Source: Camelus dromedarius (lineage: Eukaryota). Taken from it: a stretch of 64,000 nt of DNA. The position numbers and the translations under genes were made by a program. Position 1 is the stretch's first letter. Each line of letters starts with the position of its first letter. Where the stretch lies: the NCBI RefSeq assembly GCF_036321535.1, contig NC_087444.1, positions 74,276,001-74,340,000 of the forward strand, written 5' to 3'. The notes beneath the pieces are model-generated. The model was not told where the DNA came from, did no database searches, and was given only the letters and a program-made list of their open reading frames with translations. This document shows, piece after piece, positions 17,047-46,251 of the stretch.

Positions 17047-20000
17047 ATGAGGGGCCACCCCTCTGTGCTGGTGCTATACCTGGGATTGACCACCTGCCTG
17101 GACACCTCAGCCAGTGTGGAGCAAGACCAAGGTGAGTGTTTAAGGGAACAGCTGGAGTCCAGGCACTGACATCCACCTTCCTCTGGCCCAGGAAAAACCC
17201 TGATTCTAGTTTCCTCCTTCCCCAGGACCCCATAGTCCTCTGTTCCCTTAAATTCAGGCTCCTCCATGTCCCCAGTCCTAGGAACCTTCCATTTTTCTGT
17301 CCCTTATGTCCTTTGGGTCCAGAAGTCTTCCTGGACTCTCCAGAAGCTCAGAGCTTCCTAGGCAGCCGTCGCCGGATTCCACGAGCCAATCACTGGGACC
17401 TGGAGCTGTTCACTCCAGGGAACCTGGAAAGGGAGTGTCAGGAGGAGAAGTGTTCCTGGGAAGAGGCTCGGGAGTACTTTGAGGACAATACTCAGACGGT
17501 GAGGGCCTGGGGTCCCCCGAGTCCCTCTGTCTTATCCAGGAACTGGGGGTTCCTGTCCCACAACTCCCTCTGACCTCATGCCTCGGAGATCAGGGTGGGC
17601 TGGTTTGGGGGGGGGTGTGGAAGCTCCCAGTTGACACGCTGCCTTTCCCGCCTTCTCTATTCCTACCCGTTCAAGGAGCGCTTTTGGGAGAACTACATCT
17701 ACAATGGCAAAGGAGGTGAGTTGGGGGAGCCCTCTTGTTCTGTGCAGCTAAGGCAGCTTCTTCCTGCGGAGGCTAAGCCAACATCCTATCCTCCACTCCA
17801 AACTTGCCCCTTCTAATTCCATGCTCCCTGAGTTCCTGGAGGTGGTTGTCAGAGAAGCCCCCTCCTTTGAGGCTAGAGGAACCCACGACGTCTTATTCGG
17901 AGGAGGTCCCATGTCCCCAGGAAGAGGGAAATACAGTTGGAAGGAGAGACCCTGGCCCACCTGAGCTGCCCTTTGGAGTCCAGAGCCCCAGTACCTTCTA
18001 CAGCTTGGTTGCTAGGGGAATTGCTCCCTAGCAACAGGGCTGGGCCAGGCCAGTCATGGAAGCCTGTCTCTCCTCACCTGCTCAATCAGCCCACCCCCAA
18101 CCCCTCCTCTGAGTTCTGAGGCCCCATCTTGGCTGCAGCCTTGTTGCTAAGGGGGGGCTGCTCCTTAGCAACAGAGCCTGGCCAGGCTGGACCAACGAAG
18201 CCTGCTCTCACTACCTGGTTGGCTCCCCCTCCCCCACAACTCTATTCCAGCCCTGGCCTGGTTGCTAAGGAGGCCTTTTCCCTAGCAACCACACCTAGCC
18301 AGGCTCAGGACCCAAGGCCTCTTGCCCACAGGAGGAGCCCCCTTCAGGCACCAGACATCCCACCCCCTTGTGGCCTGGTTGCTAGGGGTGGATGCACCTT
18401 AGCAACAGGCCCTAAGTCTGGGCTGGAGTCCTCACATTGGTTGCTAGGGGAGGTAACTGCTTTGCTACAGGCCTATCAAGGCTTGGTGGCTCCTTGAATC
18501 CACCTGAAACATGTCCGGATTGGGAGGGTTCGGCTTCTTAGTGCAGCTTTTTGCTAAAAGGGCTAAAAGCCTGGGGTTTGCTGTTTGAGGAAAGCACCCC
18601 CCCACCCTGTGCTAAAGGAAGTTTCCCCTAGCAAGGCCTCATGAAGCCAGGGTCCTCCCTGGACACCCCTGCCCCCCACCAACTTCCTCAGTCATGAAGT
18701 CTTGGATTGCTAAGGGTGCTGCACCTTAGCCAAGGGTCCACATGAGTTCTAGACACCAGCAATCTGTTATTGAGGGGACATCCATAAATTCCTCCCTTGA
18801 TCAATGAATTTTTTCCTAGCCTTCTGGTAAATGACCAAGCCTTCCTCTAGATTCTGCTCCTTTTTCAGAGTGGAGGCCTTGCCTCTCAGTGGTCTGGTTA
18901 GTAAAAGGGACTGCATTCCAGTGGGGTCAGTGTTGCCAGTTGAAATACAAGACTTCCCCCTACCCCTCCAGTTAAATTTGAATTTCAAATGCAAAGGAAT
19001 AATTCTTTAGTAGAAGTAGATTTCATCTATTCCATGGGACATTACTTATACTAAAAACTTATTAATTATGTATCTAAAGTTCACATTCACATTAAATAGG
19101 GTATCCTCATTATTATTCACTAAATTTAGCAATGCTAAGGGGGTTGGGGTATAGCTCAGTTGGTAAAGTGCATGCTGGGCATGCACGAGGTACTTGGTTT
19201 GATCCCCAATACCTCCATTAAAAAAAGAAAAGAAAAGGAAAGCAGTGCTCAGTGTGGGGGCCTGGAGAGTTGGCTACCTGAGCTCCCTACCCTAAATGTG
19301 TCAACAGCAATCTTAGGAGGGGCCTTTGTCCTCACAGTGATTCAGCTGCCGTATTTTCTAGTCCCTGATGATGTTATCCCAAGCCCTTTCTGCATTTAAT
19401 TCATTGCATTTTTGCAACCTGTCAGGAAGGGGATATTTTTCCCATTTTACAGAACAGGAAATGGAGGCTCATAGAAGTGAGTGAGGTGAGTTGCCTGAGG
19501 TCACACAGCTAGGAAGTAACCCCAGCTCTGCCTTCCATCTTAGGCAGTTCTTTTCCCTGAAGGTGGCCAGGGGCTGGGGGGCAGAAGGTATCTGGATGTT
19601 GGGATGGGTGGCAGCCCCTGAATTTGCGCCCCCCTCCCCCCTACAGGGCGTGGACGAGTGGACGTAGCAGGCCTGGCTGTGGGGCTGACATCAGGCATCC
19701 TACTGATTGTCCTGGCTGGTCTGGGAGCCTTTTGGTATCTGCATTACCGGCGGGGCCGGGGCCAGCAGCCCTGTCCTCAAGAGTAAGAGGGCTTTGGGGA
19801 AGAAGGGCTGGGTGCTAGAGAGCAGGATGAGTAGAGGTGGGAGGAAAAATGGACCTAAGGAGATGGGCCAAGGATGGGGGCAGATGGGTGTGGCTCAAAG
19901 ATCAGAGGAGATAGGATCAGTGGAGAAGGAATCCATGAGATAGTCTACTTACGGCATCTGTGGCATCTGTCAGGCTATATCCTCAGTACCTGGCACGGGG

Positions 20001-21086
20001 TAGAAACTCAATCAATATTGGCTACCTGCTGTCTTTACAGGACCAAGTTTATGTGTGATTATCATTCTGGATATTGTATCTGGTGAAGCTACAACCTGTG
20101 GTCTGTGGGTGTCTGTGGGTGTCTGTGGTATGTCAGTTTCCGTGGTGACAAGGTGGAGCCGTGTTTGTGTGTGCCTGAGTTGTCTAGGTGAGTCTACATG
20201 AGTGGCAGGGTCTAAGAGAGGGCTGGAACATCAGTCTTGGAAGTAACGGAGGTCTTTTGAGGAAGAGCTGATGATCAGAGTGGATCTGGGAAATTTGTAA
20301 CTAAGTGTATCTCCGTGTTGTGTCTGTTTCTTGTGTGTCTGCCTGCCTCTCTGCGGGACTCTCTTTCAACATTGCTCTGCCTGTATCTGGAGCACATGTG
20401 TCTGTGCAGGAATCTGTCTCAGAAGTTGATTTCTGTGGCTGCCTGTCCCTGTGCATCTGCCTGTTCCTGTGTGGAGTCAGGTTGAAGGTGACCCTCTTTT
20501 TCCGGGGCCATCTCCCTTCCACCTGTGTCTACCACTCTCAGAGTCTCCGCCTCCCTAAATCCTTCCTCCTCCTAAGTCTCACTATCCTGTAGGTTTCCCT
20601 TTTTAACAGTGCATCTTCTGTCCCTAGGGCCGAGCTAATCAGCCCCCTGAGTCCCCTGAGCTCGCCGGGCCTGCCGACGCCCCTACCTCCACCCCTACCC
20701 CCAGGTCTCCCCACCTACGAGCAGGCCCTGGCGGCCTCTGGGGTGCACGACGCACCTCCGCCCCCCTACACCAGGTATGGGGCTGGGCTTCGGCCGGGGG
20801 GCGGGGCGCAAAGAGGAGGGCACGGCCGGAGGAGGGGCGTGGGCTTAGGGGCGGGACTTGGAATTTTAAGTTTATTATCCGGGGCGAGGCTTGGAGAGCG
20901 GGGGCGTGGCTCAGTGTCCTGTGTGTGTGGAGCATTATAGGAGGGTGGGTCTTCTACCCAGAGGGTCCGGGATTGGCTGGGATGCCCAGGGCGGGTCGGA
21001 GTGGTCTTGGTTGAGGGGGGAAAAACAGCCGGGTCTTTCACTCCCCACTGTGCCCCTCCCCTTCCAGCCTCAGGAGGACCTGCTGA
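17047..21086 (+). CDS. PRRG2: Proline-rich Gla (G-carboxyglutamic acid) protein 2, transmembrane, 200 aa
   Basis: Coding exons 17047-17131, 17323-17498, 17676-17715, 19647-19782, 20628-20774, 21068-21086 (603 nt). Signal peptide MRGHPSVLVLYLGLTTCL, propeptide ending RIPR|AN, Gla domain (LELFTPGNLERECQEEKCSWEEAREYFE), TM helix (LAVGLTSGILLIVLAGLGAFWYL), and LPTY and PPPY WW-binding motifs. Confidence 0.97.
18008..18732. repeat. Degenerate ~120-bp tandem array whose units contain inverted RFX X-box-like pairs
   Basis: GTTGCTARGG...CCYTAGCAAC at 18008-18035, 18143-18172, 18261-18289 and 18378-18406; half unit at 18440; decayed units at ~18609 and ~18707. Confidence 0.9.
19140..19236 (+). mobile_element. 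tRNA-derived SINE, Vic-1-like
   Basis: GGGGTATAGCTCAGTTGGTAAAGTGCATGC...GATCCCCAATACCTCC plus A-rich tail. Confidence 0.88.
20095..20129. repeat. 10-bp tandem repeat (GTCTGTGGGT)x3
   Basis: Directly visible in PRRG2 intron 5. Confidence 0.85.
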
Positions 21087-23000
21087 AGAGCTGCTTCGGA
21101 GCCGGGGTTCTCCGAACTGTGCCCCAGATTCGCACCGGATTCCGGAAACCCCCAGGCGTCTTAAAAGTCCAGAGCCGAGCTTAAGGGGTGATGGGAGTAG
21201 GGGTCGTCCGGCTAGAGGCCTACTCTAGCACACGTGTTTCCGCCGCGTACGCGTACACGCAAGTTCCCGGGTAACGTGTTCCCGCGTCCCTCGCAGGCCC
21301 CCCCATCTGACGGTGGGGCTACCAGCCAGCCCCGCCCCGGGGTAGGCGTGCTTGGAAACTCGGACCCTGGTGCGCAGGCTGGTTGTGCAGACTTAAGTGT
21401 GAGCAGGTGTGACAGCCATCGCTCTCAGTGTCACGGGCCACTCACACGCATGACCCTGCCTGTGCACACGCGCGTCTTCGTGCGCTCCCCGGGAGTGCAC
21501 AGGGGCACTTTGCAATCCAGGGAAAGGGTGGGGTACATTTGCAAGCGTGTTCGGTTGGGCGCAGGCTCGCACTGCACCTGGGGGACTTGGGTTGAGCTCT
21601 TTCCCTAAATAAAAACCCGTTGGAAAAAGACCCCAAAAAGTGAGATGATGCAAAAAAAAAACCCCAATCAAATAAACTGAACCGCGCTCTCGGGCGCGTC
21701 TGCGCACGGCAGACCTGGCTTTCTGTACAAATGCTGCGCCCTACACCCCCAGGCTCTGCTAGCGCTCANNNNNNNNNNNNNNNNNNNNNNNNNNNNNNNN
21801 NNNNNNNNNNNNNNNNNNNNNNNNNNNNNNNNNNNNNNNNNNNNNNNNNNNNNNNNNNNNNNNNNNNNNNNNNNNNNNNNNNNNNNNNNNNNNNNNNNNN
21901 NNNNNNNNNNNNNNNNNNNNNNNNNNNNNNNNNNNNNNNNNNNNNNNNNNNNNNNNNNNNNNNNNNNNNNNCCCGGGGGCCGCCCGGGACGCCCCCTCCT
22001 GAGCGCGCGCCCCCCCTTCTCTCTTGCAAGCGCCAGGGCAAAGGCGGAGACAGCGGGGTCCCTCCTCCCCCCTCTTTCCCTCCAGGGGGAACCCCCCTTC
22101 CCCCCTCCTTGNNNNNNNNNNNNNNNNNNNNNNNNNNNNNNNNNNNNNNNNNNNNNNNNNNNNNNNNNNNNNNNNNNNNNNNNNNNNNNNNNNNNNNNNN
22201 NNNNNNNNNNNNNNNNNNNNNNNNNNNNNNNNNNNNNNNNNNNNNNNNNNNNNNNNNNNNNNNNNNNNNNNNNNNNNNNNNNNNNNNNNNNNNNNNNNNN
22301 NNNNNNNNNNNNNNNNNNNNNNNNNNNNNNNNNNNNNNNNNNNNNNNNNNNNNNNNNNNNNNNNNNNNNNNNNNNNNNNNNNNNNNNNNNNNNNNNNNNN
22401 NNNNNNNNNNNNNNNNNNNNNNNNNNNNNNNNNNNNNNNNNNNNNNNNNNNNNNNNNNTGGAGGAAGGGGCCAAGGGGTGGGGGNNNNNNNNNNNNNNNN
22501 NNNNNNNNNNNNNNNNNNNNNNNNNNNNNNNNNNNNNNNNNNNNNNNNNNNNNNNNNNNNNNNNNNNNNNNNNNNNNNNNNNNNNNNNNNNNNNNNNNNN
22601 NNNNNNNNNNNNNNNNNNNNNNNNNNNNNNNNGAGAGATGCAGCGGGAAAATGGGGGTGCAAAACAATTTCAGACGGGAAGGCCTTGGGAAGGTGGGAGG
22701 GACTGGCGAAGCAAGGCCTGGATTTCCCCCCATCCTTGGATTCCCGGCTTGCTGACCCCTCCCCCCGCGCCCCGGGCTCTGCTCTTGCAAAGGTGGGAAG
22801 GAAAAGAGAATTAGAAAGCAGACCTGGGGGGCGCGCCCCCCCAGGTCCTATTGTTCCGGGACTGCGCGAGACCGCGCTGCTCGGGCCCCCCCACGAAATT
22901 CCGCGCGTAGAGTGGGCACAGGGCCCCGCCCCCTTCCTAAACTGGGGTTCTGTGTGTGTAAGGGGGGGGCCTGGCATCTGGGACACGCCCCCTTGAACTC
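20600..23000. promoter_or_regulatory. CpG island covering PRRG2 3' end and PRR12 promoter/exon 1
   Basis: High CpG and GC density around three N gaps. PRR12 exon 1 is expected in gap 22112-22458 from synteny. Confidence 0.65.
21608..21676 (+). terminator. PRRG2: PRRG2 candidate polyadenylation signals (two AATAAA)
   Basis: AATAAA at 21608-21613 and 21671-21676, ~520-590 nt after the stop codon. Confidence 0.65.
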
Positions 23001-25231
23001 CCCCACCCCCAAAGACAGAATTCTAGTTAATGGCGAGGAATGAAGTGTTTGACCTCCTGAGTCTGGGCCATGGATTTGGGCCGTTGCATAGGAAGATTCG
23101 GATGTTTCCCGGGTGTGTGGCTGTGTGTGTGTGTGAGCCTGGGCCCAGTGTGTGCGTACCTGGCAGGCTGTTCACCTGCGAATCTGCCCCTTTCCTGCTG
23201 TTTATTTGTGTCACGCCCTCACTCTTCACCTGCCCCCTCCCCCTCCCCCCACACACCTGGTTTCCCAGCATGGCTAGGCATGACCCCACGTGTGTTAGTA
23301 TTTTCCATGTGGGACTCCTCGCTCTGTATCTTTCTTTCCCCACGAGTGAGTTGGATACTGGTTTGCACACATACCTAGCTTTGCATGGGCCCATGCATTT
23401 CAACCCAGGGGGATGGAAGGTGTTCAAGTCCGCACTTGTACCTGGTACTTTCCCCGAGTCCTGTACCCTCCCCGCCCCCCAACCCTGCTTTTTGGGTAAC
23501 AATCTGCCTCCTGCTCCCGCCTCGGTATGCACCATCCCATGAGGTTCAGGGCCTATGTGCTCCCACATGTCTGAAGAAGAGGGGGCGTCCCTCAAGGGTT
23601 GGCCCCAGGGCCTTGTGTCACCTGCTGGGTAGGAGCTGTGGAAGGAGGTTCACATTTTCAACTCAAGGCTCTTTCTCTGACTCTTGACCCTGTTTGTCTC
23701 CTTGTGCATGCCTGTGTTTGTAAACGTGAGGCTATCTGGGCTCTATTTCCTGGGGCTCGAGTGGAGACCATTTTTATGGCTCTTTAGGTGGGCACTCCGG
23801 TTCCCTTGTCTTCTTTCCTTTAGGGCCCAAAGTTCCTTAGGATAACCCCCAGTCCAGTCAGCTGGAAGATTCCCCCCAACTCCCCCGGGGATTTGCTAGT
23901 TCCCTTCTCTGAGGGCAGCTTCAGAGGATATCCTAACATCTCCCCCTTCCCNNNNNNNNNNNNNNNNNNNNNNNNNNNNNNNNNNNNNNNNNNNNNNNNN
24001 NNNNNNNNNNNNNNNNNNNNNNNNNNNNNNNNNNNNNNNNNNNNNNNNNNNNNNNNNNNNNNNNNNNNNNNNNNNNNNNNNNNNNNNNNNNCGGGCTGGC
24101 CCTCCCTCCGAAGCAGCTGATTGGCTGCTTAAAGTTCCATCCCTTCCTAGTTGGCTGTGCTCTGCGTCCTGGCCCGCCCCTTGCTACTTCTCCTCTGATT
24201 GGTTTTTCTGGGGCTGCTTAATTTCACGCTGGATTCGTCCGCCCCTGTTTCTGGCCCCGCCTCTTTCGCTCCAATTGGTCGCGTCCTCTCAGCCCTCAGA
24301 TCCCACCTTCTCTTCCAGGCTTTTCCGCCTCTCCAGCCCACCCCAATCCCTGCCCTTTGGGTTTGCCCATCCTCCTGGTTCCTTGGTTCTCTGAATTCTT
24401 TTCTTCCTGATTCCCTTTCTTCCTGATTGGCTCCGATTCTTCGACCCTCCCCCTTTCCCTTAGATTTGCACACTACCTTATTCTTCCGCTGTGGCCCTGC
24501 TTCTAACGCTTCCTATTGGCTCCCTTCCTTTGATCCTGCTGCCTTCCTTCCTAGATGGATCTACTACGAGACTGTGGTGTCCAATTTGATCCTTGATCCT
24601 CTAGGTTGGGTCCTTCCCTTTATTCCTCTCCATTTTTTTTTTAATCTGCATTCTCTCTCTTTGACTCACCCCCTTTTGACTTGTTTTCTGGTTCTCCCAG
24701 TGGCTCCAGTCACCCCAAGCCTTCCCCTTTCTGGAACTGCCTGAATCCTTTGACCTCTCATGGACCAAAAGGACTCTCTGCCATTTTGCTCCCACATTTT
24801 TTACTGCTGGATTTTTCTACTACTTTGTCTACCTTTCCCCTCCTGGACTCCTTACTCTTATGATTGTATCAAACCTCATCCTGCCTACTCTCTCCCTAAC
24901 TTATCTCTGCCCACTTTTTCCTCTCTGAACCTGACCCTTCCCTCCAACCTGTTTTCCTGACCCAGCGTGCCTTTGGCCTGCTCTTTTTCCCTTTTAACCC
25001 TGCCCTATCCCCCACCTAGCTGACTCTACCCCCCTNNNNNNNNNNNNNNNNNNNNNNNNNNNNNNNNNNNNNNNNNNNNNNNNNNNNNNNNNNNNNNNNN
25101 NNNNNNNNNNNNNNNNNNNNNNNNNNNNNNNNNNNNNNNNNNNNNNNNNNNNNNNNNNNNNNNNNNNNNNNNNNNNNNNNNNNNNNNNNNNNNNNNNNNN
25201 NNNNNNNNNNNNNNNNNNNNNNNNNNNNNNN
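21769..25231. other. Assembly gaps (N runs) 21769-21971, 22112-22458, 22485-22632, 23952-24091, 25036-25231; further gaps 41644-41776 and 46252-46399
   Basis: Counted from the sequence. ORF-track entries containing X are gap artefacts. Confidence 0.98.
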
Positions 25232-25232
25232 T

Positions 25233-46251
<21,019 letters not shown>

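Follow-up and report, generated by a model that had tools for sequence, protein, structure and literature searches.

Within the window, by which is meant the whole 64,000-nucleotide (nt) stretch of Camelus dromedarius DNA analysed here (contig NC_087444.1, positions 74,276,001 to 74,340,000, forward strand), an intron of the gene PRRG2 carries an array of nine copies of the word GTTGCTARGG, arranged as four inverted pairs and a fifth, unpaired left arm, and to judge from its words this array is a homotypic transcription-factor site cluster of the RFX X-box type, unusual both in its geometry and in its age. It is probably best understood as a multivalent platform of nine RFX half-sites that have been selected one by one and that work together as an intronic cis-regulatory module. 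That RFX is the binding protein is something we infer from the words themselves, and what is said below about the direction of regulation and the target gene is speculative. RFX factors control programmes as different as cilia, major histocompatibility complex (MHC) class II expression, spermiogenesis, tumour suppression and neurodevelopment, and the RFX sites described are single palindromes or single half-sites near promoters. Nine intronic half-sites in inverted pairs, at a non-canonical distance and kept for some 100 million years, would, if the reading is true, constitute a new site architecture.

The array stands out clearly from its surroundings. A search of the 64-kb window for the pattern GTTGCTARGG-N7-11-CCYTAGCAAC returned exactly four matches, and none occurred across 100 dinucleotide-preserving shuffles of the same sequence. 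The window has nine exact 10-mer arms, every one of them inside 18008-18449, an arm search of the window found no second copy of the array, and RFX-type half-site hexamers (GTTGCY/RGCAAC) number 10 in the 18-19 kb bin against a window mean of 0.73 per kb. Successive units start 135, 118, 117 and 62 nt apart, and with its decayed units the whole array extends over 18008-18733. The initial annotation had described four inverted pairs, a lone left arm at 18440 accompanied by GGTAAC, decayed pairs near 18609 and 18707, and periods of 135, 118 and 117; the pattern search and the shuffles returned the pairs at the same coordinates, the lone arm and the periods are as described, and the decayed pairs can be placed at 18607-18635 and 18706-18733. 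In the following list, and in those below, a strand is given where one was assigned; L and R denote the left and right arms of the numbered pairs.

17960 to 18520: conserved non-coding block with the five well-kept units, delimited by a sliding conservation profile.
18008 to 18035: pair 1, GTTGCTAGGG-N8-CCCTAGCAAC, from sequence and pattern search.
18143 to 18172: pair 2, GTTGCTAAGG-N10-CCTTAGCAAC, from sequence and pattern search.
18261 to 18289: pair 3, GTTGCTAAGG-N9-CCCTAGCAAC, from sequence and pattern search.
18378 to 18406: pair 4, GTTGCTAGGG-N9-CCTTAGCAAC, the best conserved pair, from pattern search and 8-species alignment.
18440 to 18457, plus strand: fifth left arm L5, GTTGCTAGGG (18440-18449), then 2 nt and GGTAAC (18452-18457), from sequence.
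18607 to 18635: decayed unit 6 (CTGTGCTAAAGG ... CCCTAGCAAG), from sequence, poorly conserved.
18706 to 18733: decayed unit 7 (ATTGCTAAGG ... CCTTAGCCAA), from sequence, partly conserved.

With its flanks the arm consensus is YTK-GTTGCTARGG-RG; R1 reads CCCTAGCAACAG, R2 and R4 read CCTTAGCAACAG, and the original right arm of the L5 unit has decayed to CTTTGCTAC. When the units are aligned with one another, all seven are homologous over the first ~65 nt, which comprise the left arm, the spacer, the right arm and a CCTGGCCAGGC-like word, and the array is thus an old tandem duplication of homologous head-to-tail units. Tandem Repeats Finder reported nothing at the array, because outside the arms the units are too diverged.

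Orthologous PRRG2 introns were fetched by exact-protein look-up from Sousa (dolphin), Canis, Elephas, Capra, Saccopteryx (bat), Microtus (vole) and Talpa (mole), and MAFFT alignments were made of the whole intron and of the block alone. The 8-species comparisons that follow comprise the window and these seven introns. The same arm series is present at the same place in the intron in 7/7 orthologues, and in the alignments every column of the four pairs and of the fifth arm is orthologous. Each pair, moreover, has its own combination of states (pair 1, AGGG/CCCT; pair 2, AAGG/CCTT; pair 3, AAGG/CCCT; pair 4, AGGG/CCTT), and these are the same in nearly all species. Because the seven orthologues share the units, their order and the unit-specific A/G and C/T pattern, the array is evidently older than the placental radiation and, on these alignments, already had as many units as today in the common ancestor of Afrotheria and Boreoeutheria; with the eight species compared, its age is bounded only by the split between those two groups. 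A recent variable-number tandem repeat was considered and rejected, as unit number and order are equal in the eight species, and the fixed copy number agrees with the earlier proposal of an old, minisatellite-like duplication in which the arms were kept. Concerted evolution or gene conversion was rejected as well: the unit-specific states are orthologously kept and each arm is conserved on its own, so that the units have not been homogenised by conversion.

The losses that have occurred are unevenly spread. Pair 1 survives intact in five of the eight species, whereas dog and mole have eroded copies and in the bat the erosion is partial; the right arm of pair 2 is kept in all eight, a single A>G in the mole still fitting RGYAAC; and L5 is likewise kept in all eight with one G>A in the mole, its GGTAAC being kept in 5/8 and reading GGCAAC in the mole. 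Most of the erosion falls on pairs 1 and 2 (in dog, mole and bat), with pairs 3 and 4 and L5 almost untouched. A 7-nt deletion before L5 is common to the window, dolphin and goat, a shared state that suggests a cetartiodactyl source. In 14 sequencing runs of the same organism, mostly DNA, 97-100% of the sampled words were present.

The strength of constraint on the arms is best appreciated against the other parts of the gene, as measured by mean pairwise identity and by Fitch parsimony counts on the accepted species tree of the eight species.

Arms: mean pairwise identity 0.93, 77% of columns invariant; 0.25 Fitch changes per site (0.19 in the GTTGCTA core).
Spacers: mean pairwise identity 0.80; 0.58 changes per site.
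Between units: mean pairwise identity 0.75; 0.91 changes per site.
Rest of the intron: mean pairwise identity 0.48; 1.49 changes per site, a figure inflated by poor alignment.
Two coding exons: mean pairwise identity 0.82-0.86; 0.95 and 1.19 changes per site at third positions, 0.21-0.23 at Gla-exon positions 1+2.

The arms are better conserved than the inter-unit sequence (Mann-Whitney p=1e-12) and evolve like non-synonymous sites, and the inter-unit sequence changes at about the synonymous rate. The comparison of arms with spacers across species that had been proposed in the initial annotation therefore comes out in favour of the arms in these placental mammals, in identity (0.93 versus 0.80) as in number of changes (0.25 versus 0.58). 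The sliding conservation profile stands at 0.70-0.92 within 17960-18520 against 0.1-0.6 elsewhere in the intron, and the vole is alignable only inside this block. Over the 72 orthologous arms, positions 1-7 are fixed at 96-99% and position 8 is always a purine (A in 34, G in 38), its state independent of that of the partner arm; the unpaired L5 is conserved as well as the paired arms. Runs of at least 6 nt that are invariant in the eight species include four arms, TGGTTGCTAGG, CCTTAGCAACA, CCTAGCAAC and GGTTGCTA, of which TGGTTGCTAGG and CCTTAGCAACA are the two 11-mers of pair 4 and CCTAGCAAC belongs to pair 3.

The array could alternatively be regarded as a neutral relic that no longer has any function, either an old minisatellite or a piece of some ancient transposable element. 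Homology among the tandem units is clear, and the sequence between them does change at a rate near the synonymous one (0.91 against 0.95-1.19). Third codon positions, however, change four to five times faster than the arms, whose rate equals that of non-synonymous positions; arms make up three of the four longest invariant runs; and both copy number and unit-specific variants are fixed in eight species spanning Afrotheria and Boreoeutheria. The contrast in rates largely refutes the neutral explanation, which we consider extremely improbable.

Inverted repeats in an intron also invite an explanation at the level of RNA, namely that 10-base-pair (bp) hairpins form in the precursor messenger RNA of PRRG2, or in an antisense transcript, and thereby govern whether the intron is spliced or retained. 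Hairpins had been named as an alternative at the outset. The arms are complementary, the loop varies between 6 and 14 nt among species, which a hairpin could tolerate, RNA assembled from other species includes PRRG2 transcripts that retain introns (P0002, P0015 and P0026), and in three RNA runs 81-86% of sampled words of 17600-19100, mostly intron, were present, words that may reflect intron retention, an internal start or DNA carry-over alike. The comparison of species nonetheless speaks against pairing: compensatory changes were found in 0/40 stem pairs of the eight sequences, a test whose power is limited because the arms hardly vary, every change in the arms affects one side only and, in most cases, disrupts a sense-strand pair, and the covariation term of RNAalifold is unfavourable (+3.76). 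On the sense strand pair 3 is mismatched (A.C) in 8/8 species, and on the antisense strand the equivalent mismatch is found in pair 4, so that neither single strand is served. L5 has been without a partner since before the placental radiation, yet it is equally conserved, and in the dog the change of L3 from GTTGCT to GTTACC costs two sense-strand pairs. Folding of the block is unremarkable (z = -1.6, single sequence), and a search of Rfam with a permissive E-value found nothing in the array. On the absence of compensatory change, the fixed mismatches and the conservation of the unpaired L5, RNA hairpins were rejected as the main explanation and are in our view quite unlikely; everything that varies points instead to a word read in double-stranded DNA. 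The three products, assembled from public RNA data of other species, continue through introns 2 to 4 and suggest that intron retention is frequent in PRRG2.

As to the protein that reads this word, the arms are predicted to be RFX half-sites of the X1 type. All nine exact arms contain the half-site hexamer GTTGCY/RGCAAC, and they conform to the single half-site with extension, CCYTAGCAAC(AG), that is characteristic of RFX5/RFX7 sites of the X1 type. The half-site rule for RFX proteins is GTNRCC, which the changed L3 of the dog still fits. The prediction is made because the words are identical to known sites and because RFX5 and RFX7 accept single half-sites. The sequence TGGTTGCTAGGG is a 12-nt identity with the X-box probe of the DYX1C1 promoter, shared by L1, L3, L4 and L5 together with their two 5' flanking bases; this probe is supershifted by antibodies to RFX1 and RFX2, and mutation of the probe site lowers promoter activity (PMC5024701). 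In the same way CCTAGCAACAG is the X-box core of HLA-DRA, the X1 box of MHC class II, as printed for a commercial probe (PMC4806502), and the arm reverse complement CCYTAGCAACAG matches it. RFX5 and RFX7 bind X-boxes having one half-site only (PMC8287911).

Parallels with described RFX systems are instructive in both directions. The half-site X-box of RFX5 and RFX7, known from MHC class II X1 and from RFX7 target promoters, resembles the array in the word CCYTAGCAAC(AG) and in its strong conservation, but the known sites are single, near promoters and beside CCAAT or X2 boxes, whereas those of the array number nine, form inverted pairs, lie deep in an intron and have no cyclic AMP response element (CRE). 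The canonical dimer X-box of RFX1-3, as in the promoters of DYX1C1 and DCDC2, likewise consists of inverted half-sites (PMC5024701). Targets of DAF-19/RFX in C. elegans likewise have more than one RFX site per regulatory region, which tunes output, although there the sites are two or three in nematode promoters and here they are tandem and conserved among mammals (PMC3245922). These multiple X-boxes of C. elegans are the nearest precedent: a full-text literature search found no description of the array, nor of X-boxes arranged in tandem or in clusters in introns of mammals, in keeping with the statement in the initial annotation that none was known.

A number of observations weigh against the interpretation as an RFX platform. 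Pairs 1 and 2 are eroded in some lineages. The hexamer cores GTTGCT and AGCAAC of a pair are separated by 16-18 nt, or by 22-24 nt from centre to centre, a distance that varies among species; in a canonical X-box the inverted half-sites lie 0-3 nt apart, and for this reason the pairs are not canonical palindromic X-boxes, a candidate that was accordingly dropped. Of the RFX assignment made earlier, the identity of the words with published RFX-bound sites and with the X1 core has stood. We know of no RFX complex documented as needing inverted half-sites at such a distance. PRRG2, NOSIP and PRR12 are absent from the searchable supplements of RFX papers, including chromatin immunoprecipitation sequencing of RFX2 in testis, and a full-text search of the literature links neither PRRG2 nor its neighbours NOSIP and PRR12 to RFX. 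The block is almost free of CpG, so it is no CpG-island promoter. Finally, NFX1 also binds the arm word, having been cloned through its binding to the MHC class II X-box (PMC2191754).

The last point leads to a different assignment, in which NFX1, or some dimer that reads the whole 28-30-bp inverted repeat, would bind the conserved words in place of RFX, and the likeness to RFX sites would be incidental. Inverted cores 16-18 nt apart are not a known RFX geometry, and the spacers are themselves somewhat constrained, at 0.58 changes per site. A rigid dimer, however, would not tolerate the variation in spacer length among species (6-14 nt overall, 8-14 nt in pair 2); arms also survive singly, as L5 does and as R1 and R2 do in the bat; and the positions that are conserved are those of the RFX half-site with its known 3' extension. 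We therefore regard a non-RFX protein as an unlikely reader of these words.

Two further known elements were considered and set aside. A complete S-X-X2-Y module of the MHC class II type is lacking, since neither CGTCA nor TGACG, the X2/CRE core, occurs in 17960-18520, and the sole ATTGG (reverse CCAAT), at 18436-18440, is not universally conserved, being kept in six of the eight species and lost in vole and mole. It lies 29 nt 3' of R4, which is close to the X-to-Y distance of HLA-DRA. The ZBTB11 site in the PRRG2 promoter has an unrelated motif (PMC10867109).

The most probable explanation for the array as a platform of RFX half-sites is that a unit of ~117-135 bp was duplicated in tandem, the duplication being already in place in the placental common ancestor, and that nine words of 10-12 nt (YTK-GTTGCTARGG) have since been kept by purifying selection, each as a half-site for the RFX family. 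The candidate binders would be RFX5 or RFX7 on single half-sites or, alternatively, dimers of RFX1-3, whose two DNA-binding domains may span both arms of a pair. Nine sites within 450 bp would create a homotypic platform of high avidity, which together with CCCCTCCCCCAC, TACCTGG and CACCTG might act as an intronic enhancer or silencer, with PRRG2, or its close neighbours NOSIP and PRR12, as targets suggested by position only. It is possible, though we think it rather unlikely, that the array belongs to an undescribed class of deeply conserved intronic RFX half-site arrays that could serve as high-avidity landing pads or sinks for RFX proteins, perhaps linking RFX occupancy inside the gene to retention of the intron or to its transcription, in place of a role as classical enhancers. 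As a platform of RFX half-sites the array would offer a simple case for how the number, orientation and spacing of sites affect RFX binding, and it may reveal RFX control of PRRG2, of NOSIP or of the neurodevelopmental gene PRR12.

The composition of the block and the other words conserved in it bear on the kind of element this might be. Over 17960-18520 the G+C content is 60% and the observed/expected ratio of CpG is only 0.04, and no TATA box was found in the block. The block being nearly free of CpG, a CpG-island promoter was rejected, and a tissue-restricted enhancer or silencer fits better; of the enhancer or internal promoter proposed in the initial annotation, the latter is disfavoured as far as promoters of the CpG-island type are concerned. 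The additional conserved words are as follows.

18226 to 18237: CCCCTCCCCCAC, between units 2 and 3; of all invariant runs in the 8-species alignment this is the longest.
18212 to 18218: invariant TACCTGG, from the same alignment.
18075 to 18080: E-box CACCTG in unit 1, kept in 6/8 species.
18501 to 18506: second E-box CACCTG, kept in 6/8 species.

The first of these is a candidate site for another factor, for example a zinc-finger factor reading G-rich DNA. Elsewhere in the intron, the sole match in the window to the canonical full X-box (GTNRCY-N0-3-RGYAAC) is GTTGCCTGAGGTCAC on the plus strand at 19490-19504, outside the array. The surrounding 19488-19510, where the match is present in most of the eight species, resembles what we take to be the core of a mammalian-wide interspersed repeat, a short interspersed element, and the match is probably a chance one inside an old repeat. 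Weak Rfam matches at 19004-19057 and 19145-19217, to mir-1302 on both strands and to tRNA, most likely represent repeat-derived sequence in a poorly conserved part of the intron.

The assignment of the intron to PRRG2, as originally proposed, is upheld by the exons on either side. Six-frame translation places a PRRG2 orthologue on the plus strand, with exons for the Gla domain and for the transmembrane segment flanking the intron of the array, and the Gla exon, used as a protein query, matched PRRG2 of ~100 mammals. The exons, all from six-frame translation, are these.

Near 17047-17125, plus strand: PRRG2 signal-peptide exon.
Near 17320-17500, plus strand: PRRG2 Gla exon.
17673 to 17716, plus strand: short PRRG2 exon encoding ERFWENYIYNGKGG.
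19645 to 19783, plus strand: PRRG2 transmembrane exon, which closes the intron of the array.
From about 20625, plus strand: PRRG2 proline-rich exon.

The intron thus extends over 17717-19644 (1.9 kb), and the array begins 290 nt past the short exon. An open frame of 122 amino acids at 18129-18497 was rejected as coding, since it passes through successive units in different frames, the indels that separate the species do not come in multiples of three, and the frame is in no predicted PRRG2 isoform. At 20770-20790 the proline-rich frame of PRRG2 passes from PPPYT into RYGAGL, where the orthologues end in SLRRPR, and the DNA there reads AG/GTATGG; because the frame leaves the orthologous ending at this point, an additional short 3' exon is suggested to encode the last residues. 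Runs of N occupy 21769-22632. NOSIP lies further upstream in the window, the first PRR12 exons lie a few kb downstream of the array, and a large PRR12 exon follows at 25254-28658. Strand composition is skewed near the PRR12 exons, with a GC skew of -0.35 and an AT skew of -0.36 over 24001-26000 and a GC skew of +0.31 over 30001-32000.

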